Source: Takakia lepidozioides (lineage: Eukaryota; Plantae; Bryophyta). From it: a stretch of 64,000 bases of DNA. Position numbers and translations under genes: made by a program. Numbering within the stretch: the stretch's first letter is position 1; each line of letters begins with the position of its first letter. The stretch lies in contig CM060733.1 in NCBI GenBank assembly GCA_030704615.1, positions 6,758,001 through 6,822,000 on the forward strand. The letters run 5' to 3'. A model generated the notes under the pieces. It made no database searches. It was given only the letters and a program-made list of their open reading frames with translations, and was not told the DNA's origin. Of the stretch, positions 17,345 to 54,000 are shown piece by piece.

Positions 17345-17525
17345 CCACTATTTTTCATTGTTTAGCACATGTCGGTAGGGCAATGTCGACTTGGCATTTT
17401 CTTAAGCACATGTCGGTAGGGCAATGTTGACTTGACATTTTTTTTAGCACATTTCGGTACGGCAATGTCGACTTGGCATTGACAACCTCGACAAATTAGT
17501 GCTAATTGAAAAGAATGGGCCGACT
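17345..17525. repeat. Dispersed repeat (TTTAGCACATGTCGGTAGGGCAATGTCGACTTGGCA x3), second copy at ~39370-39510
   Basis: Near-identical blocks at both sites, including the trailing ATTGACAACC...TTAGTGCTAATT...AAGAATGGGCC. Confidence 0.8.
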
Positions 17526-18149: not shown

Positions 18150-18906
18150 TTTTAAAAACAAAAACACCAGAAGTGAAAATCGGCGCCGATCATCACATCT
18201 ACCCAAATGCCAAATGCAAAAAAGAAAAAAATGGAAAAAGAAAAACCAGAAGTGATCGTCACATCCAAAATAAAAAACACCAAAAGTGATCCTGGTATAG
18301 GCTGTGACTTGTTACCCTGGTCGATCATCACATTTACCCAAATGCCAAATGCCAAATGTCGAAAAAAAAAAAACCAGAAGTGATGTTCGGCGCCGATCAT
18401 CACATCTACCCAAATGCCAAAAAAAAAAAAAAACCCAGAAGTGATCATCACATCCAAAATAAAAAACACCAGAAGTGATGATCGGCGCCAATCATCACAT
18501 CTACCCAAATGCCAGATGCAAATAAAAAAAAACAAAAAAATAAAAAAAAACACCAGAAGGGATCGTCACATCCAAAATAAAAAAAACACCAGAAGTGACG
18601 ATCGGCGCCGATCATCACATCTACCCAAATGCCAAATGAAAATAAAATAAAATAAAAAATAAAATAAAAATAAAAATCAGAAGTGATCATCACATCCAAA
18701 AAAAATCACCAGAAGTGATGATCGGCGCCGACCATCACATCCACCCAAATGCCAAATGCAAATGCGCAAAAAGAAAAACAAAAAAAAAAAAATATTGATC
18801 GTCACATACCCACAAATGAAGAAAAAGAAAAAGAAGAAGGGAATGAAAAAAAACCCAGAAATCAGAGAAAAAATGATGATCGTCGATGATTATCACTCCA
18901 TCTACC
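18150..18906. repeat. Tandem array with 24-bp palindromic consensus GTGATGATCGGCGCCGATCATCAC plus A-tracts; continues at 28280 after the LTR insertion
   Basis: Copies at ~18380, 18475, 18595 and 18715 each have one mismatch. The motif ATCTACCCAAATG is split by the insertion. Confidence 0.85.
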
Positions 18907-19993
18907 TGTCACAGATATAGCCCAGAAGAACTCACCATGAGTAAATACCAGAAGTTACATCATGATCTACCATGATTTACCATTACTTACCAAGTTACCG
19001 GGAGTTTATCAAATTACCAAGAGTAATTTGGGAAACTACTCATGAAGCTTCTTTTGGAGGAAACTTCTCCATCAAGATACCTCTTTTGTTTAAAGAAGCT
19101 TCTCCATCAAGAAACCTTTGTTTAATCTTGGAAACTTCTCCAGCAAGAAACCTCCATAGGGGAAGCTTCTTGGGGAAGCTTCTTAGTAGCCAGTATATAT
19201 AGGAGGCGAGACTGGACACTCTTCAGTCTCGCCAAACTGTCAAGGACGAGAATATGACTAAACACAAACAAGAGATAAGACTAGAGGTACAAGGCTAGAC
19301 AAGAAGTCAAGGTCGGCGTGGCCGAATGCACGATGAGCAAATAGGAATCAAGACGATCTTTATAACAATGAACAAGAGTACAAGATATTGGAACACGACT
19401 TGAATACTGGATTGCTGGAAACTGGACTGGTACAAGGCTAGACAAGAAGTCAAGGTCGGCGTGGCCGAATGCACGATGAGTAAATATGAATCAAGACGAT
19501 CTTTATAACAATGAACAAGAGTACAAGATATTGGAACACGACTTGAATACTGGAATGCTGGAAACTGGACTGGAGTACCAGATACTGGAAACTGGGCTAG
19601 GGTACTGGGAACTGGAAACAAGAGTAGCTTGAACTGGTGTTGGCGAGACTGAAGAGTGTCCAGTCTCGCCTCCTATATATACTGGCTACTAAGAAGCTTC
19701 CCCAAGAAGCTCCTATGGAGGTTTCTTGCTGGAGAAGTTTCCTCCAAATGAAGCTTCCTGAGTAGTTTCCCAAGTTACTCTTGGTAATTTGGTAAACTCC
19801 CGGTAACTTGGTAAGTAATAATAAATCATGGTAGATCATGATAAATCACGATAAGTCGTGATAACTTTTGGTAACATGGTAACTTGGTAACTTCTGGTAT
19901 TTACTCCTGGTAAGCTCTTTTGGGCTATGTCCGTGACATCGCCCCCTCCTCTAGCGCCGAGTTCCTCGAGGAGCGGTAAAATCTTGGACTTGC

Positions 19994-20395
19994 TTAGAGT
20001 TGGAGAAAATCCAAAATCCGACGAATGGTACTTGCCAAGTATTCGGCTTTTCGTTCTTGACTCATATGATTTATAGGTCCATGCAACCATCGATAATGTC
20101 CAACACCTTGAACTTGGGACCACGCAGTGATTTGAGCATTCTGATTTTCGAAGTTGCCTTCAGACATGATTTTGTTGCCCTCTGGGTCTGAAGCCTCAAC
20201 CTCCAACAGAATTATCAGACTTCGAGTAGGCTCCACTTGTCGTCGTACGGGGTTCAGACGAGGAAGTACGCGTCGCATTGGTGGCCCATCGTCTCGAGAG
20301 CGTCGGCGTGATGTTGAAGGTCGTGAGAGTCGGGACGGCTGATCTGGTAGCTGGGTAAGCGACAACTCCAATGTATCTGGTTCCTGCGACTCCAT
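19994..20395 (-). CDS. Extra ~133-aa ORF in the 3' region of the chromovirus (copy 1)
   Basis: The ORF is open in both copies (MESQEPDTL...ILDFLQL), with a TATA-like element ~45 bp upstream of the ATG. Confidence 0.5.
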   Translation of the reverse strand: MESQEPDTLELSLTQLPDQPSRLSRPSTSRRRSRDDGPPMRRVLPRLNPVRRQVEPTRSLIILLEVEASDPEGNKIMSEGNFENQNAQITAWSQVQGVGHYRWLHGPINHMSQERKAEYLASTIRRILDFLQL

Positions 20396-20541
20396 ACTGC
20401 CAATACAAGATGCAAGAGTGTTGGGAGTGTAGCTATATATACTGATGTGTGGTGCTCCTCCCTCCTTAGCGTGTATCAGGTACATTGAATTCGGAGTCTT
20501 CACCTTGAAGCTAACTTGGTTGACATCATCGTTGTGACGTC

Positions 20542-23500
20542 TTATTGACGTGTAGCTCGGAGCTTAGCTGGATATCGTTGATGAAACTCTTGGACTTTGT
20601 CAGATGCATTGGCGAGGTTGGATGAAGGTTCCCACGTTCGTTCGCTGATGTCGTAGCCTTTCCAATGTATGAAATACTCAAGACGTTTATACTTGATGCG
20701 AGAGTCTAGGACTTCGTCGACTTCATACTCAATTTTCTGATTGACTTCGATTCGTGGAGATGGTATGGAAACTCTCCCTGGAATATTCGATGGATGATAC
20801 AACTCCAATAATGAAACATGAAAGACTGGATGGATGCGCATACTTCGTGGGAGTTCAAGCCGAAAACTGACCGGATTTATTTGTCGAATAATTTTGAATG
20901 GGCCCAGGCGTTGATAATCCAACTTCCTTGATGGTCGCGAGGTTTGTATGTCCCGTCGAAGAAGCCACACACGATCTCCGACCTTGAACTGGGGTTGGAG
21001 TTGACGACGTTGATATGCATACTCCTTGTATTGTTTTTGAGCTTTTGCGAGGTGAAATGTAAGCTCATTGTAAATCGTAGCAAGATGAGTAGTAAGGTTT
21101 TCTGCAGCAGGGCTTCCAACAGTCTTCATGTGGAAAGGGTTGGCTCGAGGATGATGACCATAATTGGAGAAAAATGGAGTTTGCTGGGTCGAAGAATGTA
21201 TAGTGTTGTTGTAGGCAAACTCAGCCAATGACAGAAGGTCCGTCCAATTATCTTGGTGATAATTTATCGTACAGCGAAGATACTGCTCCAAAATCTGGTT
21301 TACACGTTTGGTTTGACCATCAGTCTGTGGATGATTAGCTGTAGAAAGGTTGATCTTAGTATCTAATATGTGAAATAATCCCTTCCAGAAATTTGATATG
21401 AACTGTGGTCCTCGATCAGATACGATGTCCTTCGGGAGTCCATGAATGCGGTAGATATTATTGAGGAAGAGTCTTGCAGTTTCCTCGCCGGTAATTGTCT
21501 TATTACATGAAATGAAATGTGTCATCTTCGTAAAACGATCTACAATAACAAAGATTGAATCAGTGATCTTGGAGATTGGAAGGTCCGTAATAAAGTCCAT
21601 AGACACGGACGACCATGGACCCTTGGGAATGGGTAATGGTTGAAGAAGGCCGTAAGGTCGATGTCGTGGTCCTTTCGCTCTAGCACACGTGTCGCAAGAT
21701 TTTATAAATTCTTTCACGAGTTTCCACATCTGCGGCCACCAATAGTCCCTGGATATCAATTCCATTGTTTTGTTGAAGCCGAAATGTCCTGCAACCGGAA
21801 GATCATGACATGTTTGAAGAATTCGAAGTCGTGTAGATCCTGGAGGTACATAGAGAAGTCCCTTGAAATAAAGTAAGTCATCTTTGAACTCGAAGTCGTT
21901 TGTAAGATGTGGGTTGTCTCGAGGTCGATTTAGTTGACTTCGTAGTGTCACAGCGAATTGGTCACTCTTCAGTGCTTCCTGAATCTCCATTATGGTCTCG
22001 ACATCGTCATATGTGGACATGGATAACATATTCAATTGGAGATTTGCTGGTTTCAAGATGATGGATTTCTGTTGGTCAAAAGCCGCATCCCCTTCTTTTG
22101 ACGCAAGATACGATCGTCGAGAAAGAGCATCTGGTTTTCCTTGAAGATGTCCGGGACGGTGGGTAATAACAAAATCAAACCTTGCTAGTGACATACTCCA
22201 TCTCGCTTGACGTCGATTCAAAACACGAGCACTCATAAAATATTCGAGGTTTTTGTGATCGGTATAGACAGTGACCTGATGTTTAGCTCCCTCCAATAGA
22301 TGACGCCACTCCTCAAAAGCTTTGATAATCGCTAGAAGTTCTTTGTCATGGATTTCATAATTGATCTCCGCAGCGGAAAATTTGCGAGAACGAAAACCAA
22401 CAGGGTGGAGTCGACCATCTGTACCGTATTGTGAGAGTACCACGCCAAGTACAAAATCCAATGCATCTGTTTCTAAGAAGAATGGTTTAGATGGGTCTGC
22501 ATGTGCTAGTATTGGAGCCGTTGTAAATGCCTGCTTCAGCCTTTCAAATGTCTGGTCAACCTTCTCGTCCCATACAAATTTGTCCTTCCCTGTGAGTCGT
22601 GTCAATGGTGCAGCAATTTTGGAGTAGTCATTGATGAAGATTCTATAGAAATTTGCAAAACCCAGAAAACATTGTACATCTCGGACCGAAATTGGTTTAA
22701 TCCACTCGATGATGGTTTGTATTTTCTTCTGATCCATAAAGACGCCTTTGTTGGAAATAATGTAACCCAGAAATTCAACCTCAAATTGATGGAAAATACA
22801 TTTCTCCAACTTGACATGTAGTCATCTTTCTCTTAATTTATCAAGGACAAGGCGTACATGGCGGCCATGTTCTTCTTCATTCCGTGAAAATATCAAAATG
22901 TCGTTCAAATAGATGACTACAAAGTCATCTAAAAATTCTCGAAAGATGTCATTCATCATATGTTGGAAAATTGCTGGAGCATTTGTAAGACCGAAAGGCA
23001 TAACACTGTATTCAAAATGTCCATACCTTGTTCGAAAAGTTGTTTTCCATTCGTCTCCTTCTTTTATCCGTATAAGGTTATAAGTTCCTCTTAAGTCGAT
23101 TTTGGTGAAAATCTTCGCTCGTCCCAGCTGGTCGAGAAGCCCAAAAATCAGCGGCAACGGATAACGATTCTTGATTGTGACTTTGTTGAGACCGTGATAG
23201 TCGACACACATGCGTAATGATTCGTCCTTCTTTTTCACAAACAAGATAGGTGCCCCCGCGGGTGATTTGGAATGTCGGATGAAGTGCTTTGACAAATTTT
23301 CATCAATGTATTCGCGTAATGCAGCCAACTCCGTCTGGGATAAGTTATAGATTGGGCCGAATGGTGGTTGGGCTCCTTCTTGTAACTCAATTGCACAGTC
23401 ATAAGGTCGATGTTCTAGCAATATGTCTGCATTTTTCTTCTCGAAGACATCTTTGAAATCTTGATATTGAGCGGGTAATGTTGAAGTACTTTTGTATGTT

Positions 23501-24057
23501 GTGGTCTTGATCGGAGTCGCATAAAGTGCAAATGTCGCCTCTTTTTTTGTAGCTCTCATGAAGGCTCTAGCTCCAAGAAACAGGGGTTGAATACCTTTGA
23601 TATTTTTGCATTTTTGTCTTGCCGAAATTTTTCGTGATTGCCAGTCGATGTCAGGATTATGAAGTACAAACCAGGGAAGTCCAAAGATTACAAGATTCGT
23701 TGGAGACTGGATGACATTGAAAACAATCTGTGATGCTTGATTTTTAAGCTTCACTTCAAGGGATCGAATTTCATGGTCAACATTTCCTGATGCTAACGGT
23801 TGTCCATCGATAACTTCAACAGGGGCCGAGAATTTCTTTCTTACGAGCGTTAAATTGTGTTGCTTCGTAAAATCTTTGTTAATAAAACACGCTGAAGCGT
23901 CCGAGTCCAAAAGTGCTTCTACAGAGATATCTCGATTTTGCATCCTGATATTTACTGGAACTGTGAAACAAGATACAAGATTTGGAGGTAGAAAGAGACA
24001 TTTTTTGGTGAGGAATTTGGGGTGTTCAGCCGCATGGTCCCTACTGTGACTGGACAT
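20542..24057 (-). pseudogene. Gypsy pol (protease, RT, RNase H, integrase, chromodomain); in-frame stop at 22822
   Basis: [10 protein letters not shown] (protease), YLNDILIFS (RT, YxDD degenerate), ETDA...DKELLAI (RNase H), HHCC zinc finger, SMDFITDLP, SDRGPQF, GPF and C-terminal YEVDEVLDSR...WKGY...TWEP chromodomain. Confidence 0.95.
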
Positions 24058-25088
24058 CTTCGTTTTCCGACCTCCTCGTATCGAACACTTGAGTGGTGCC
24101 CCGAGCTTTGAATCTTCCTCTTGTTGGGGCAGTTTAATGCCATGTGATCATTTTCTCCGCAATAAAGGCATAATCCATTCGAGCGCCGTCTTTGATTTTT
24201 ATGTGGCGTCAATGGCTTGAATCGGACAGCATTAATCTGCATAGGATCATTACCGGATGTCTGATGGATCGTTGTATTTGGTGCCGTAGTAGCAGCGACA
24301 TGGTGCGTCGTCGACCATCCAGATCGCTTCTCTTGACGTCTTTCGAACAAACGATTATCGCATGCAATGACTTGGGTGATGAATTTGCTCAGTGTACTCA
24401 CGTTTGGCATTGTTAGCAACAAATCTTTAATATCATCTTTTAGGCCACATCGAAACTGGCTAATGAGACTCTTCTCATTCCAGTCAAGGTCGCACGCAAG
24501 TTGGCAAAATTCGGTAGCATAAACGGAAGCTGGACGTGCTCCTTGTCGAAGATTTCGCATCTTTGTCTCTGCAACTCTCTCTCTATCATTCTCTCCAAAT
24601 GTTGCAGTGAACTCGGACATGAACGCTTCAAAATTGTATAGTAAATGCAAATTTTTCTCTAATAGCGGTGCAAACCAAGATAGGGCAGTGCCTGATAGAA
24701 GGGTGCCCACGAATCCCACTTGAATACCTTCATCAGAGTAGCGTTGTGGATGTAGTCGTAGGAACAATCGTACTTGTTGAACAAAACCGTGAAATCTTGA
24801 TCTCGTCCCATCAAATTTCTCGGGCATGCTGACCTTTGGTTCCCTTGTAATCTGTTGAAGATTTGGAGGAACCGTTGCAGTAAGATTTGTTGTAGTAGGG
24901 ACTCGTAAGGTTGAAGATCCATTGTTCGACTCCTTCAACTCTGAAATTTGTTGTTGCAAATTGTTGAAAGCATTGCCAAGGTCTTGAGACTGATCAGCTT
25001 GTAGTTGGGCAGTAGAGGCACGAAGTTCTTGCATCTGGAGCTGAAGACTCTTCAATGTGACGACCATTTCCGCAAATGTGTCTTCCAT
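23952..25088 (-). CDS. Gypsy gag (PEG10/RTL-like) with CCHC knuckle; probable -1 frameshift site GGAAAAC near 24062-24068
   Basis: [11 protein letters not shown]...[10 protein letters not shown]...LRQG...DPMQI...[14 protein letters not shown]. Confidence 0.9.
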
Positions 25089-25127
25089 CTTAACTAACTA
25101 AGGAACAAACTTTAGTCTCGCCAAACT

Positions 25128-26952
25128 ATCAATTATGAAATCCATGACAAAGAACTTCTAGCGATTATCGATGCTTTTGAGGAGTGACGTCATCTATTGG
25201 AGGGAGCTAAACATCAGGTCACTGTCTATACCGATCACAAAAACCTCGAATATTTTTATGAGTGCTTGTGTTTTGAATCGACGTCAAGCGAGATGGAGTA
25301 TGTCACTAGCAAGGTTTGATTTTGTTATTACCTACCGTCCCAGACATCTTCAAGGAAAACCAGATGCTCTTTCTCGACGATCGTATCTTGCGTCAAAAGA
25401 AGGGGATACAGCTTTTGACCAACAGAAATCCATCATCTTGAAACCAGCAAATCTCCAATTGAATATGTTATCCATGTCCACCTATGACGATGCCGAGATC
25501 ATAAAGGAGATTCAGGAGGCACTGAAGAGTGACCAATTCGCTATGACACTACGAAGTCAAGTAAATCGACCTCGAGACAACCCACATGTTACAAACGACT
25601 TCGAGTTCAAAGTTGACTTACTTTATTTCAAGGGACTTCTCTATGTACCTCCAGGATCTACACGACTTCGAATTCTTCAAACATGTCATGATCTTCCGGT
25701 TGCAGGACATTTCGGCTTCAACAAAACAATGGAATTGATATCCAGGGACTATTGGTGGCCGCAGATGTGGAAACTCGTGAAAGAATTTATAAAATCTTGC
25801 GACACGTGTGCTAGAGCGAAAGGACCACGACATCGACCTTACGGCCTTCTTCAACCATTACCCATTCCCAAGGGTCCATGGTCGTCCGTGTCTATGGACT
25901 TTATTACGGACCTTCCAATCTCCAAGATCACTGATTCAATCTTTGTTATTGTAGATCGTTTTACGAAGATGACACATTTCATTTCATGTAATAAGACAAT
26001 TACCGGCGAGGAAACTGCAAGACTCTTCCTCAATAATATCTACCGCATTCATGGACTCCCGAAGGACATCGTATCTGATCGAGGACCACAGTTCATATCA
26101 AATTTCTGGAGGGGATTATTTCACATATTAGATACTAAGATCAACCTTTCTACAGCTAATCATCCACAGACTGATGGTCAAACCGAACGTGTAAACGAGA
26201 TTTTGGAGCAGTATCTTCGCTGTACGATAAATTATCACCAAGATAATTGGACGGACCTTCTGTCATTGGCTGAGTTTGCCTACAACAACACTATACATTC
26301 TTCGACCCAACAAACTCCATTTTTCTCCAATTATGGTCATCATCCTCGAGCCAACCCTTTCCACATGAAGACTGTTGGAAGCCCTGCTGCAGAAAACCTT
26401 ACTACTCATCTTGCTACGATTTACAAGGAGCTTACATTTCACCTCGCAAAAGCTCAAAAACAATACAAGGAGTATGCAGATCAACGTCGTCAACTCCAAC
26501 CCCAGTTCAAGGTCGGAGATCGTGTGTGGCTTCTTCGACGGGACATACAAACCTCGCGACCATCAAGGAAGTTGGATTATCAACGTCTGGGCCCATTCAA
26601 AATTATTCGACAAATAAATCCGGTCAATTTTCGGCTTGAACTCCCACGAAGTATGCGCATCCATCCAGTCTTTCATATTTCATTATTGGAGTTGTATCAT
26701 CCATCGAATATTCCAGGGAGAGTTTCCATACCATCTCCACGAATCGAAGTCAATCAGAAAATTGAGTATGAAGTCGACGAAGTCATAGACTCTCGCATCA
26801 AGTATAAACGTCTTGAGTATTTCATACATTGGAAAGGCTACGACATCAGCGAACGAACGTGGGAACCTTCATCCAACCTCGCCAATGCATCTGACAAAGT
26901 CCAAGAGTTTCATCAACGATATCCAGCTAAGCTCCGAGCTACACGTCAATAA
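25128..26952 (+). pseudogene. 5'-truncated pol copy (part of RNase H, integrase, chromodomain)
   Basis: Near-identical reverse complement of 20542-22365; it starts abruptly at INYEIHDKELL. Confidence 0.95.
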
Positions 26953-27098
26953 GACGTCACAACGATGATGTCAACCAAGTTAGCTTCAAGGTGAAGACTC
27001 CGAATTCAATGTACCTGATACACGCTAAGGAGGGAGGAGCACCACACATCAGTATATATAGCTACACTCCCAACACTCTTGCATCTTGTATTGGCAGT

Positions 27099-27500
27099 AT
27101 GGAGTCGCAGGAACCAGATACATTGGAGTTGTCGCTTACCCAGCTACCAGATCAGCCGTCCCGACTCTCACGACCTTCAACATCACGCCGACGCTCTCGA
27201 GACGATGGGCCACCAATGCGACGCGTACTTCCTCGTCTGAACCCCATACGACGGCAAGTGGAGCCTACTCGAAGTCTGATAATTCTGTTGGAGGTTGAGG
27301 CTTCGGACCCAGAGGGCAACAAAATCATGTTTGAAGGCAACTTCGAAAATCAGAATGCTCAAATCACTGCGTGGTCCCAAGTTCAAGGTGATGGACATTA
27401 TCGATGGTTGCATGGACCTATAAATCATTTGAGTCAAGAACGAAGAGCCGAATACTTGGCAAGTACCATTCGCCGGATTTTGGATTTTCTCCAACTCTAA
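27099..27500 (+). CDS. Extra 133-aa ORF between pol stop and PPT (copy 2)
   Basis: ATG at 27099, TATATATA at ~27053, and open in both copies. Confidence 0.5.
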   Translation: MESQEPDTLELSLTQLPDQPSRLSRPSTSRRRSRDDGPPMRRVLPRLNPIRRQVEPTRSLIILLEVEASDPEGNKIMFEGNFENQNAQITAWSQVQGDGHYRWLHGPINHLSQERRAEYLASTIRRILDFLQL

Positions 27501-28519
27501 GCAAGTCCAAGATTTTACCGCTCCTCGAGGACCTCGGCGCTAGAGGAGGGGGCGATGTCACGGACATAGCCCAGAAGAGCTTACCAGGAGTAAATACCAG
27601 AAGTTACCAAGTTACCATGTTACCAAAAGTTATCACGACTTACCGTGATTTATCATGATCTACCATGATTTACCATTACTTATCAAGTTACCGTGAGTTT
27701 ACCAAATTACCAAGAGTAACTTGGGAAACTACTCAGGAAGCTTCATTTGGAGGAAACTTCTCCAGCAAGAAACCTCCATAGGGGAAGCTTCTTGGGGAAG
27801 CTTCTTAGTAGCCAGTATATATAGGAGGCGAGACTGGACACTCTTCAGTCTCGCCAACACCTGTTCAAGCTACTCTTGTTTCCAGTTTCCAATACTCCAG
27901 TCCAGTTCCCAGTACCCTAGCCCAGTTTCCAGTATCTGGTACTCCAGTCCAGTTTCTAGCATTCCAGTATTCAAGTCGTGTTCCAATATCTTGTACTCTT
28001 GTTCATTGTTATAAAGATTGTCTTGATTCATATTTACTCATCGTGCATTCGGCCACGCCGACCTTGACTTCTTGTCTAGCCTTGTACCAGTCCAGTTTCC
28101 AGCATTCCAGTATTCAAGTCGTGTTCCAATATCTTATACTCTTGTTCATTGTTATAAAGATCGTCTTGATTCCTATTTACTCATCGTGCATTCGGCCACG
28201 CCGACCTTGACTTCTTGTCTAGCCTTGTACCTCTAGTCTTATCTCTTGTTTGTGTTCAGTCACATTCTCGTCCTTGACACTACCCAAATGTCAAGGGAAA
28301 AAAAACTATCCTCAGAAATAAGAAACAAAGTCTCTGTAGAATGCATTTTCCTTCTAGATGTTGCATGTCTCTATGGATATAGGTGTGCACCCACGGTATT
28401 AGGCCCAACATCTTCCACGATTCCATCCACGGCTGGGCTGGGTTGTGCGTCATGTGACGTCAGCCTACGTGGCTATAAGCCCAAGTGACGTCAGCGTAGG
28501 CTCACACGCTCACGTGGCC

Positions 28520-51030: not shown

Positions 51031-54000
51031 TGTCGCGCACCTCACTTCGGTAAGCTCCCCTTCAAGTCATAGTTACTTGCTTTGATGCGCGCGCCTGACT
51101 CCCAACCTGGCCGCCGGGCCAACTCGGAGCTTCGGCTGCTCACCGGGACATAACGGTCCCCCTTCGCTCTCCCGAAAGACCCTCCACCTATTTGGGCCTA
51201 GTGGAATTCCCTTTGGTAGATGGCAGTCCGGAACAGCTCCCCACTCTTTGGTCGCTTTCCGGCTCGCTCGCTTACTCACTAGTTTTTGGACACCAACGGG
51301 CTTCCACCGTTCTCGGGGTTACTACTCCCCTTATATATACTTCTGTAGCTGTCCGCGGGGGTTTCACAACCAGCCATGCCATTTTATGGTGAATCACCAC
51401 GAAGACCCTCGACTCCCGGTGGTGAGTCGCGGTGAGTCTTGGCCCACTCACCACGGCCCCTACGGCGTGGCAAAATACTTCACCGTGACATTGTCCGTGA
51501 ACACCTTCACTGGGTTGGAACCAACATAGTGGCGCCAGAGCTCAAGACAGTGCACCACCGCCTTCATCTCTTTCTCGTGCGTCGGCCACCGTCGCTCCAC
51601 TTCATTCAGTTTCTTACTTTCGTAAGCCACTGGACGTCCATCTTGCATCAGTACACCCCCAATCGCGAAGTCCGACGCATCTGTATGTATCTCGAACGGA
51701 CGATCGAACTCCGGGATTTTCAAGACTGGAGCTTCCGCCATCCGCTGCTTCAATTCAGCAAAAGCTTGGCCACAAAAGGTGTTCCATGCCCAAACTTTAG
51801 ATTTACACAGAAGGTCCGACAGCAGCCCCGCGATCTTGGCGAAATTTCTCACATACTTCCAGTAATAGGAGGTGAGTCCTAGGAAGGAACGTACTCCCGG
51901 GACCGAAGTCGGAGGCTCCCAGTCCAAGATCGCCCTCACCTTTCTGTCATCCATTTTGATCCCATCCTGTGTAATCACATGCCCCAAGAACTCCACTTTC
52001 GTGACCCCGAATTTGCACTTTGAAGCTTTGGCATACAGCTTCCCTTCTCGCAACTTTTGGAACACCCTTTTGAGGTGCTCCAAGTGCTCCTCCTTTGTTT
52101 TCGAGTACACCAAGATGTCGTCGATGTACACGATCACAAAGTCATCCAACCACTCCTGGAAAAGGCTGTTCATCAGCGTGCTAAATGTTGCTGGTGCATT
52201 GGTGAGCCCAAAAGGCATCACCAAGAACTCATATGAACCATACCTTGTCCTGCACGCGGTCTTCTCCTCATCTCCTTCCGCCACCCGAATTTGGTGATAG
52301 CCGGAGCGCAAGTCGATCCGGCTGAAATACTTCGCTCCTGCCAACCGATCGAAGAGGTCGTCGATCCTTGGCAAAGGGTACCGGTTTTTGATAGTCACCT
52401 TATTCAGAGCCCTGTAATCGACACATCCGCAGCGTCCCATCCTTCTTGTCTGCAAATAGCACCGGGGCTCCGTAAGGTGACTTACTCGGCCGGATGTACC
52501 CCTTTGACATTAGATCTTGAGCTGAGTCTTCAGCTCGACCAACTCTCTGTGGCTCAACCGTAGGGCGCCTTGGCAGGCGGTTCCGATCCCGTATCACCTC
52601 AATCTGGTCAACTCCTCTTCGCGGTGGCAAGCCGCTTGGTAAATCCTCCGGCATCACATCCTGGTATTTCTCCAAAATCCCCTTGATCCAATCTGGGCTC
52701 GGCTCCCCATCGCCTTCTCCTTCACTTCTCTAATGTAAAGCAAAAAAATGGGGCTCGTGTGCCTCCTCCACGGCCCACTCCTTTGCTGACAGAAGGTTTA
52801 TTCGCCCTCCCACGGATTTGGGCGTTTCCGACACTCGTAAAACCTCGCCACCATTCCCACATGGCAGCGTGACTACTCTCTTGCGGCCATCTATGACCGC
52901 TCCGGATTTGCTCAAAAAGGTCATCCCCAAAATGAGATCCACTCCATCGATCTCGCAGATGGTGAAGTTCTCACGTCCCTCCCAACTCCCCAGTTGAAGA
53001 GGAACATCAAACGCCAACCTTGTCGCCAACTGTGGTTCTCCTTTGGCAGAACGCACCTCAATAGAGGCCCCCACGTCACTTGTCGGGAGTCCCAACTTTC
53101 GCGCCGCCGCGGCGTCATGAAGGAGTGCGACGCTCCTGTGTCCACCAACAACGACACGTTAGTTCCGGATATTATCCCATCCACGAACAATAACTGACTC
53201 CCTTTACGCAGGGGCCAGTTTCCTGATACAACTCACAAGAATAGTTGCCTACCTTGCAAGTCCTGGCGACCACCGCTTCCACCAAGCGACTGATGGTATC
53301 TTCCGACAGCTCCGTGGTTGCCCGAGTCATGTTCAATTTGTTTCTTGGCCATGTGCCCGGGCTCCCCGCAATTGAAACACACTCCATCAAAGGTCGCCTT
53401 CTGTCCGCCATAAGCCGCTCCACCCGCTTTTCCTTTCGAAGCACCGGGTGCCGCCTTGACGTGTGAAGGCCCTCCCTTCGATTTCCACGTGCCATTGTCG
53501 CCGCGTGGCCTATCCCACTTCTTTTCCGGTCGGAAGGAGTCACCTTCCCGCCGGGTCTTCTTGTGGTTCAGCTCCGTACGGCCTTGTCTCTCACCCTAGG
53601 GACATCCGAGAAACATTCAGCCCTCTCAATTGCCTCGTTCAAAGTCTTGGGTGGCTTCTCCTCCAACTTCCGCCTGGCCCATGGGGCCAGTCCCGCCACA
53701 AAGTTGAAGACCATTTCTGGTTCTGCCATGTCCGCGACTTCGAGCAACAGCACATTGAAAGCCTGGACATACCCCGAATGTCATCTGTTTGCTTCAAATT
53801 CCTCATCTTGTCCCGGGCAAGCCAGGACGCGTTGAGGGGCACAAACTGTCTCTTCATCAATTCCTTGAACCCACTCCAGTTCAAGGTTTCCGGGCTTGGA
53901 CCTCGGTCGTGAAGGCGTTTCTGCCACCATTGTTGAGCATAGCCCCTCAAATAGGTGGGAGCCACTTCCACCCGATCCTCGTCACTCAACTTGGCCGCCC

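Follow-up and report, generated by a model that had tools for sequence, protein, structure and literature searches.

Anatomy of the composite element

The window, as we call the whole 64-kb (64,000-nt) stretch of Takakia lepidozioides DNA analysed here, contains at 18907-28279 a composite retroelement that holds 2.5 LTRs and 1.5 internal regions, a content that rules out a simple inversion (Table 1). On the forward strand the order is a sense U3, an 11-mer, the dinucleotide AC, an antisense LTR, an antisense polypurine tract (PPT), antisense pol and gag, an antisense primer-binding site (PBS) and sense sequence running from RNase H to the end of an LTR. A single 5-bp duplication, CTACC, borders the entire composite, and the rebuilt empty site aligns across the join with the adjacent satellite units (CATCTACCCAAATG). 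An earlier note on this DNA had placed one target-site duplication (TSD) around the whole element, and CTACC is indeed found at both sides; its structural statements in general hold, apart from small corrections. No further copy of the family was found within the 64-kb window, and the closest public gag relatives are only ~50% identical.

Table 1. Features of the composite element, in coordinates of the window
Feature	Position	Strand	Basis or remark
Left TSD, CTACC	18902..18906	.	Empty-site reconstruction versus satellite units
Sense U3, begins TGTCAC	18907..19224	+	Three-way LTR alignment; includes TATA box and PBS-like 'decoy' arm 19205-19214
11-mer AGTCTCGCCAA, predicted first 11 nt of R (self-primer)	19225..19235	+	Identical to anti-PBS
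AC, complement of the GT spacer between LTR and PBS	19236..19237	+	Outside the LTR, which reads on CACC
Complete antisense LTR, 701 bp, U5 end to U3 start	19238..19938	-	
Antisense PPT	19939..19952	-	Sense counterpart 27542-27555
Antisense pol: RT, RNase H, integrase (zinc finger, core, SH3), chromodomain	20545..24147	-	Pfam, frame analysis
Antisense gag, intact 378-aa ORF, ATG at 25088	23955..25088	-	Pfam, frame analysis
Antisense PBS (25114-24), AC (25125-6), T (25127)	25114..25127	-	Terminus of the antisense unit
Left inverted arm	19238..22365	-	Pairs with 25128-28279
Single-copy 'loop' between arms: N-terminal part of RNase H, RT, protease region, gag, leader, PBS	22366..25127	-	
Sense partial pol: RNase H from ~43 aa in, integrase, chromodomain, PPT	25128..27555	+	
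Complete sense LTR	27556..28279	+	TATA 27816-23, decoy arm 27827-36, self-primer 27847-57
Right TSD, CTACC	28280..28284	.	Empty-site reconstruction versus satellite units
Matches of AGTCTCGCCAA	19225-35 (+), 19640-50 (-), 25114-24 (+), 27847-57 (+)		

Antisense pol is a single reading frame interrupted by one stop at 22822-22824 (frame analysis), and the chromodomain at the integrase C-terminus (Pfam Chromo, E=7.7e-15) has the Y...W..Y cage residues, at positions that we take to be those of the aromatic cage of HP1. The antisense unit ends within 3 nt of its PBS and its 5' LTR is missing. That this unit stops at the anti-PBS had been proposed and is confirmed, with its end shifted from the proposed 25126 to 25127, i.e. 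PBS plus 3 nt; the T at 25127 is either the first base of the absent 5' LTR or non-templated. The sense partial pol carries a premature stop at 25187 and a 1-nt insertion at 25253, and the U5 of the right sense LTR contains two 143-bp tandem units. In the three-way LTR alignment a 44-bp deletion, a 71-bp insertion and nine private substitutions set the left U3 apart from the two other LTRs, bearing out its description as a separate length variant.

The primer-binding site and its partner in the LTR

The PBS had been described as matching the element's own 11-mer downstream of the LTR TATA box, and the match is complete (11/11), the TATA box starting at 27816 and the 11-mer at 27847, 31 nt apart. 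The same relationship extends to 34 related metagenome loci which, together with this element, have a post-LTR site pairing perfectly over 10-12 bp with an LTR site 28-40 nt past the TATA box. This set comprises 16 distinct PBS/primer sequence pairs with zero mismatches, and each of helix positions 4-10 is occupied by three to four Watson-Crick pair types. Among the relatives the post-LTR site follows the pattern xACA-GT-TTG..., with the GT spacer kept at 53 sites, and the helix invariably ends at CAA, followed by a conserved CACCAGT. In the predicted fold, nt 1-11 are base-paired with the PBS. At least 11 PBS variants co-vary with the LTR, which is incompatible with one fixed tRNA, and the majority have no TGG, which excludes a tRNA 3' end as the primer for those variants. 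The covariation in relatives lends strong support to the proposal that this element self-primes in the manner of Tf1. Transcription is predicted to start at the first primer base, the A at 27847, and RNase H to cut after nt 11, for which the conserved TATA distance and helix end are indirect indications. A conserved hairpin in U3 also co-varies, its 'decoy' arm masking the primer sequence, and could be the element's guard against inverted cDNA joining. The PBS of this element does itself include TGG, as TGGCGAGACT. A tRNA fitting it would have the 3' end ...AGUCUCGCCA; ARAGORN found no tRNA within the 64-kb window.

To our knowledge, self-priming has been dissected in fission-yeast Tf1 only, and in plants it is a bioinformatic prediction. 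The locus had been put forward as genomic evidence of self-priming in a plant chromovirus, an idea that is not new, since self-priming was already predicted for the Tcn1 clade, to which moss chromoviruses belong (Neumann et al., 2019, PMC6317226); for the Selaginella member SM-Tcn1 neither priming mode was evidenced (Novikova et al., 2010, PMC2864245). The present element is Tcn1-like by its domain features, sharing with the chromoviruses of mosses and club-mosses a gag-pol organization and a C-terminal chromodomain with an aromatic cage, as well as a predicted self-priming mode and possibly the lack of a tRNA-type PBS. Those surveys cover ordinary copies, whereas the locus described here is an inverted composite.

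The junctions and candidate origins of the composite

The 11-mer AGTCTCGCCAA has exactly four matches in the 64-kb window, every one within the element (chance expectation ~0.8 matches with one mismatch permitted). It is also the crossover of the left junction, since 100% identity to the right LTR stops exactly there. A native LTR continues after the 11-mer with CACC, whereas the left junction continues with AC+TGTCA, the anti-PBS/spacer/anti-LTR string that recurs at 25114-27. The LTR beside the junction has a PBS on one flank and a PPT on the other, and such an LTR can come only from a product of reverse transcription, from a circle or from a tandem array. These observations support a left junction that matches, nucleotide for nucleotide, the prediction of PBS:self-primer pairing. 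At the other end of the antisense unit the sequence stops near the PBS, as noted, and 19236-25127 has the termini of full-length minus-strand DNA; no 5-bp duplication surrounds the unit (flanks CAAAC versus ATCAA). Because both of its ends fall where a minus-strand DNA ends, the unit is most likely derived from a reverse-transcription intermediate joined via PBS:primer pairing. On this view the locus records a mishap, either in reverse transcription or in the repair of cDNA.

Several routes to such a structure were considered and rejected. Had a 1-LTR circle crossed over at the 11-mer, the anti-PBS would again be followed by CACC, but ACT and RNase H are observed. If the template switch had taken place on strands of the resident element itself, the LTR beside the PBS would run into flanking DNA, not into a PPT. 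Autointegration was dismissed because there are no processed LTR-to-target joints: the U5 end lies in its native GT-PBS context and the other junction includes no more than a single base of LTR.

Plant genomes abound in nested insertions and illegitimate deletions, and a complete antisense copy might have been placed by integrase into the 5' LTR of a resident sense copy, with a later deletion of ~4 kb removing its 5' LTR and the resident part up to RNase H. We regard this as improbable, even though the TSD of the outer copy is intact and the second junction resembles end joining. The insertion must land exactly at the base after the 11-mer and the deletion endpoint must fall within 3 nt of the PBS; furthermore, an extra A is needed (native LTR CCAACACC versus junction CCAAAC+TGTCA), and the 14-nt copy of anti-PBS, spacer and T would have to arise by accident. 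The inner copy has one LTR only, no 5-bp TSD of its own is seen around it, and the outer LTRs are not mutual nearest relatives.

The second junction is less informative. It reads ACT-A-TCAATT where the anti-LTR would read ACT-G-TCAAGG, such that the TCAA microhomology invoked in the earlier note needs one mismatch, and a blunt join is equally probable. With no convincing microhomology, this junction fits many processes.

The inverted arms differ by 50 substitutions and three indels (97.7% identity). Their coding differences comprise 5 synonymous and 22 non-synonymous changes, a synonymous share close to the random expectation of 22%, indicating that the arms decayed after they were formed. These differences fall in clusters (P=0.008 and P=0.001) and, being both clustered and neutral, suggest gene conversion. 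In the three-way LTR comparison there are 9/3/2 private changes (nine in the left LTR, two in the right) plus two large indels, and the antisense LTR, not the left one, is the nearer relative of the right LTR. We had considered this comparison as an arbiter between a resident copy and a foreign donor, and dropped it once the clustering indicated gene conversion. The left-U3 variant that had been read as the mark of a different donor is thus real, and as proof of a donor it is weakened and not decisive, because clustered arm differences fit gene conversion. The divergence of the arms also means that they are not a single molecule read twice, which bears on whether the composite was created in assembly, by wrongly linking family copies of different orientation or by carrying over a fold-back chimeric read. 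Inverted repeats of 3.1 kb within a repeat family are hard to assemble, but an artefact is very improbable here, given that the outer ends have a common TSD in a reconstructable empty site, that both junctions sit at biologically meaningful bases, and that 11 bp of homology is not what assemblers join on.

Our preferred explanation, held tentatively and at somewhat short of an even chance, is that an unintegrated reverse-transcription product of a self-priming, Tcn1-like chromovirus was attached, in reverse orientation, to a sense copy from the same family that was already resident. We infer the following steps and their order. The plus strand over the right LTR would end 3' in a single-stranded PBS copy, as in Tf1-type elements, and this tail would be complementary both to the 3' end of the minus strand and, in every resident LTR, to R1-11 of the sense strand. 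Annealing of the tail to R1-11 of a resident 5' LTR or solo LTR, with trimming of the non-homologous flap, would join the resident U3 and 11 nt to AC and the anti-LTR in an integrase-independent repair of the single-strand-annealing type. The distal cDNA end may then have been joined into RNase H of the sense copy without useful homology, with loss of the intervening resident segment, or alternatively may have snapped back, with the right LTR recombining with a resident LTR. The CTACC duplication would be a relic of the original, ordinary integration of the resident copy, and the arms would later have decayed neutrally and traded sequence by gene conversion.

Several observations agree with this capture of cDNA at a resident copy. 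An intact anti-LTR with its spacer adjoins a resident-type 11-mer, as in PBS-homology-directed insertion, and the antisense unit has no TSD and is truncated at its distal end, as in the Tf1 pathway. A pre-existing resident copy would also fit the sense U3 and the TSD. If one resident element had contributed both outer LTRs, these should be nearest relatives, and the observed kinship of the right LTR with the antisense LTR must then be due to gene conversion, or to a solo-LTR target combined with snap-back cDNA. Counting against capture, self-BLAST for inverted LTR structures found no second example among 80 related loci.

The earlier note had instead proposed that a nascent plus strand primed on a PBS and that the resulting chimeric cDNA was integrated. 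Spelled out, this route would run inside the particle, with a PPT-primed plus strand (U3 plus the first 11 nt of R) imitating the RNA self-primer, annealing to a PBS and priming a full minus strand, which would then switch at the PBS to plus-sense synthesis reaching from RNase H to the end of U5; the 9.4-kb chimera would have been made double-stranded and integrated once by integrase, yielding the CTACC duplication. We think this rather unlikely. It predicts the same nucleotide-exact left junction and minus-strand termini, and one TSD does enclose a U3 start and a U5 end. A distinct left U3 is what a second, co-packaged template RNA would leave, although the likely gene conversion weakens that support, and copying of the last segment from the chimera itself would have made the arms identical at origin, which the neutral differences fit. 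Difficulties arise with how the right end was made. In a snap-back on the same strand, synthesis should continue via GT-PBS into anti-U3, leaving U3 rather than U5 at both ends; had the last segment been copied from the minus strand on which the left U3 was made, one U3 variant should be present at both ends, and the two differ; and a U5 right end is hard to reconcile with a right LTR that resembles the antisense LTR. The scheme also requires at least three template switches and complete second-strand synthesis, and the plus strand has to terminate inside the 11-mer. Of this mechanism, self-priming, PBS:primer pairing and the minus-strand termini are supported, while plus-strand priming in the particle and integration of the chimera as one unit are not established. 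Integrase-free capture would appear to explain the locus as well as the in-particle route, or better.

Comparison with known systems

Approximately 50% of Tf1 cDNA retains a single-stranded PBS at its 3' end, and Tf1 inserts at PBS homologies via Rad52 single-strand annealing, mostly at resident Tf2 copies and with the distal end truncated, a route that accounts for ~4% of wild-type events; the products described are in the same orientation (tandem), and inverted joins at R1-11 are unmentioned (Li et al., 2022, PMC11042837). The Takakia element resembles Tf1/Tf2 of Schizosaccharomyces pombe in having a PBS complementary to the first ~11 nt of its own RNA and in the single-stranded PBS tail to be expected on its cDNA. 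Further likenesses are the probable insertion at a resident related element, the incoming DNA without a TSD, and the intact 3'-LTR-bearing end with a truncated distal end. It differs in that the join is inverted and makes use of R1-11 in a resident LTR, not of a resident PBS, in that the product is head-to-head instead of tandem, and in that the host is a plant and the case is known from sequence only. Because the PBS of such an element is complementary to the beginning of its R, its unintegrated cDNA could pair in inverted orientation with whichever LTR is resident; if this is what happened, inverted annealing would yield palindromic structures prone to breakage and gene conversion.

In budding yeast, retrotransposon cDNA is captured at chromosome breaks and recombines with resident Ty1. 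The composite shares with these events the use of unintegrated cDNA as repair material, little or no junction homology, either orientation and no integrase signature. Ty1 is primed by a tRNA, meaning that its PBS is matched by no LTR-internal sequence; a junction exact to the primer, like the one at this locus, is peculiar to elements that self-prime. Retroviral snap-back minus-strand DNA and hairpin-primed second-strand cDNA synthesis are likewise known processes, in which a minus strand folds back at its 3' end and uses its own 5' part as template, so that inverted arms enclose a single-copy loop as at this locus. The known cases are short hairpins in strong-stop DNA, whereas the loop here would be 2.8 kb and the turn shows no visible pairing.

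There is an even chance, in our estimation, that the locus is a snapshot of the intermediate preceding the second jump, recording an 11-nt primer, an AC spacer and a terminus at PBS plus 3 nt, as well as a head-to-head failure mode specific to self-priming. The table of 16 co-varying pairs and the co-varying U3 hairpin are reusable for annotating this clade. If the snapshot reading is right, primer, spacer and minus-strand end would all gain independent support, exact to the nucleotide, in an element from a plant.

Layout and target site of the composite element

Repeat finding, BLAST and direct reading resolve a single composite element with an LTR start (TGTCAC) at 18907 and an LTR end (TTGACA) at 28279. 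Pfam searches place Gag, RVT_1, RT_RNaseH, Integrase_H2C2, rve, SH3_Tf2-1 and Chromo domains on the minus strand and a second set, from Integrase to Chromo, on the plus strand, confirming domain order and orientation. The antisense unit is almost intact, with gag open and pol in one frame with a lone stop (22822-4); the sense piece is interrupted by a stop (25187) and by one inserted nucleotide (25253). A 2.76-kb single-copy loop separates inverted arms of 3.1 kb (19238-22365 and 25128-28279) that share 97.7% identity. Misassembly is possible, but a fold-back sequencing artefact is at odds with arms that are clearly different molecules. The U5 regions contain two tandem 143-bp units, 97-98% identical (19286-19571, 27944-28229).

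Features of the composite element in left-to-right order
Feature	Position	Strand	Remarks
Sense U3, 318 bp	directly before 19225	+	leftmost part; repeat finding, BLAST, direct reading
AGTCTCGCCAA	19225-35	+	after sense U3
AC	19236-7		between 11-mer and antisense LTR
Antisense LTR, complete	19238-19938	-	
Anti-PPT	19939-52	-	
Antisense pol, then gag	right of anti-PPT	-	
Antisense leader end, AGTCTCGCCAA-AC-T	25114-27		
Sense RNase H (from inside), integrase, chromodomain, PPT	between 25127 and 27556	+	
Sense LTR, complete	27556-28279	+	

The insertion is hosted by an A-rich satellite with units of ~95-120 bp and core CATCACATCTACCCAAATGCCAAATGC (18150-18800, 28280-28330), of which one more, degenerate unit lies to the right, and CTACC is found at both flanks. 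Fused with a single CTACC, the flanks align to neighbouring units without a break over the join (CATCTACCCAAATG), and this reconstructed empty site and the shared CTACC indicate that the outer U3 start and outer U5 end stem from one integrase event. In the related locus L003 (525-535), the flank of the first LTR likewise has CTACC at its end, identical to the target-site duplication at 18902-18906, which may reflect target preference or coincidence. Upstream of the satellite, at 17358-17480, a 41-nt unit is repeated three times in tandem (90-93% identity). The stretch 52111-52425 weakly resembles the element's RT region in antisense (65%), which points to another, distantly related gypsy-type RT.

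Self-priming in the element and its relatives

With the TATA box at 27816, the 11-mer, the predicted first 11 nt of R (R1-11), begins 31 nt further on, at 27847. Its sequence exactly complements the 11 nt that come after LTR-GT in the antisense unit, and the 64-kb window has no copy of it outside the composite element. For comparison, 80 loci encoding gag relatives of 42-57% identity were taken from metagenome contigs. In 34 of these, as in the window, the site after the LTR end (xACA-GT-TTG+7-9 nt) pairs without mismatch, over 10-12 bp, with a site in the locus's own LTR; TATA[AT]A lies 28-40 nt before that LTR site, and a conserved CACCAGT comes after it. They comprise 16 different primer/PBS pairs with zero mismatches and three or four Watson-Crick pair types at each of helix positions 4-10, whereas a PBS set against another lineage's primer forms a mean of only 6/10 pairs. 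TGG is absent from most PBS variants, so that these could not pair with the CCA terminus of a tRNA. Folding of R-U5-GT-PBS is predicted to close nt 1-11 onto the PBS, with unremarkable overall energy (z = -1). The self-priming proposed in the earlier note is thus upheld by 11/11 complementarity and by co-variation, and Tf1-like priming of the element and its relatives has strong comparative support. This support is not new, since self-priming was already predicted for most Tcn1-clade chromoviruses, in mosses and club-mosses (Neumann et al. 2019, PMC6317226); the aromatic-cage chromodomain would fit that clade.

At all related loci with the site, the primer helix ends in CAA, followed by CACCAGT, and the LTR in xACA, followed by the GT spacer, a possible recognition context for RNase H cutting. 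The primer-to-PBS distance is ~430 nt in the composite element and 95-270 nt in relatives. Between TATA box and primer lies a PBS-like decoy that pairs with the primer (27827-27855, 19205-19233), also present in L001 (280-323), L003 (770-812), L004, L008, L010, L014, L070 and L074; among the related loci compared, it is not present in L007, L055 and L041. The hairpins measure 7-13 bp, and from lineage to lineage decoy and primer change together. Transcripts would include the decoy only within the 3' U3-R copy, where it could mask the primer; such masking is speculative, and the decoy may be relevant as a side finding.

The antisense unit and its junctions

The antisense unit starts at the first templated base past the primer and ends 3 nt beyond the PBS; the 5' LTR is absent. 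Both ends thus fall where the termini of a full-length minus-strand DNA preceding second strand transfer would be expected, as had been read previously, and we consider the unit's derivation from an RT intermediate quite probable. The extra ACT may stem from a short stretch of RNA that RNase H did not remove, or from non-templated addition, the latter being common for Tf1 RT (PMC11042837).

Where a native LTR continues from the 11-mer into CACC, the left junction has AC+TGTCAAGG, a string identical to the anti-PBS/spacer/anti-LTR context at 25114-27. The left join thus represents a crossover within the 11 nt common to R1-11 and anti-PBS. Nested insertion of an antisense copy is unlikely, as it would have to hit exactly the base after the 11-mer and gain an extra A. 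The adjoining LTR has a PBS on one side and a PPT on the other, an arrangement not found in an integrated element but offered by the RT product after first strand transfer, circles and tandem arrays. No usable homology is present at the second junction (25127/25128); the TCAA microhomology suggested for it requires a G-to-A mismatch, and by rough estimate its use and a blunt join are about equally likely.

Joining of the two parts

In Tf1, the plus strand of about half of the cDNA retains a PBS copy, single-stranded, as its 3' tail, and in an integrase-independent route, accounting for ~4% of wild-type events, Rad52 anneals this tail to PBS homologies, mostly in resident Tf2 copies and with truncation of the distal end (PMC11042837). 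In a self-priming element the tail would also match the sense-strand R1-11 of every resident LTR, and annealing there would give an inverted join that matches the observed one base for base; Li et al. report no inverted R1-11 joins for Tf1 (PMC11042837). The earlier note instead envisaged nascent plus-strand DNA priming on a PBS. Within the particle, a plus strand with R1-11 at its end would stand in for the RNA primer, two further template switches would follow, and the chimera would be integrated once. That would yield the same left junction, but needs a snap-back copy halted at U5 or else an explanation for a right LTR closer to the antisense LTR than to the left U3, and is less favoured. 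From this one locus, we slightly favour Tf1-like annealing because it is built from documented steps and because the U5 right end and target-site duplication would simply be those of the resident copy; a variant in which a resident solo LTR is broken and a snap-back (hairpin) cDNA bridges the ends also fits.

In a three-LTR comparison, the left U3 is set apart by a deletion of 44 bp, an insertion of 71 bp and 9 substitutions private to it, against 3 private substitutions in the antisense LTR and 2 in the right LTR. The indels confirm it as a different length variant, which at face value would make it an older or foreign segment. Between the arms there are 50 differences of neutral appearance (5 synonymous vs 22 non-synonymous; random expectation 22% synonymous). 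They are strongly clustered: 17 lie within the first 486 columns (P=0.001), and two stretches of 498 and 461 columns have none (P=0.008 and P<0.0001, respectively), the signature of gene conversion between inverted arms. Because conversion would make one arm's private changes look left-private, the donor argument is weakened and the three-LTR comparison cannot decide between joining models.

Recombination of cDNA with resident copies is already known; the inverted, primer-exact join and the preserved complete minus-strand unit are apparently undescribed. Four related loci, L003 (531-8948), L041, L051 and L055, are arranged as flank-LTR-internal-LTR-internal; a single LTR recurs in each ~5-kb period, and the units are 94.7-100% identical to one another. 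These single-LTR tandems could alternatively be an assembly cycle; their layout is that of the Tf1 integrase-independent product.
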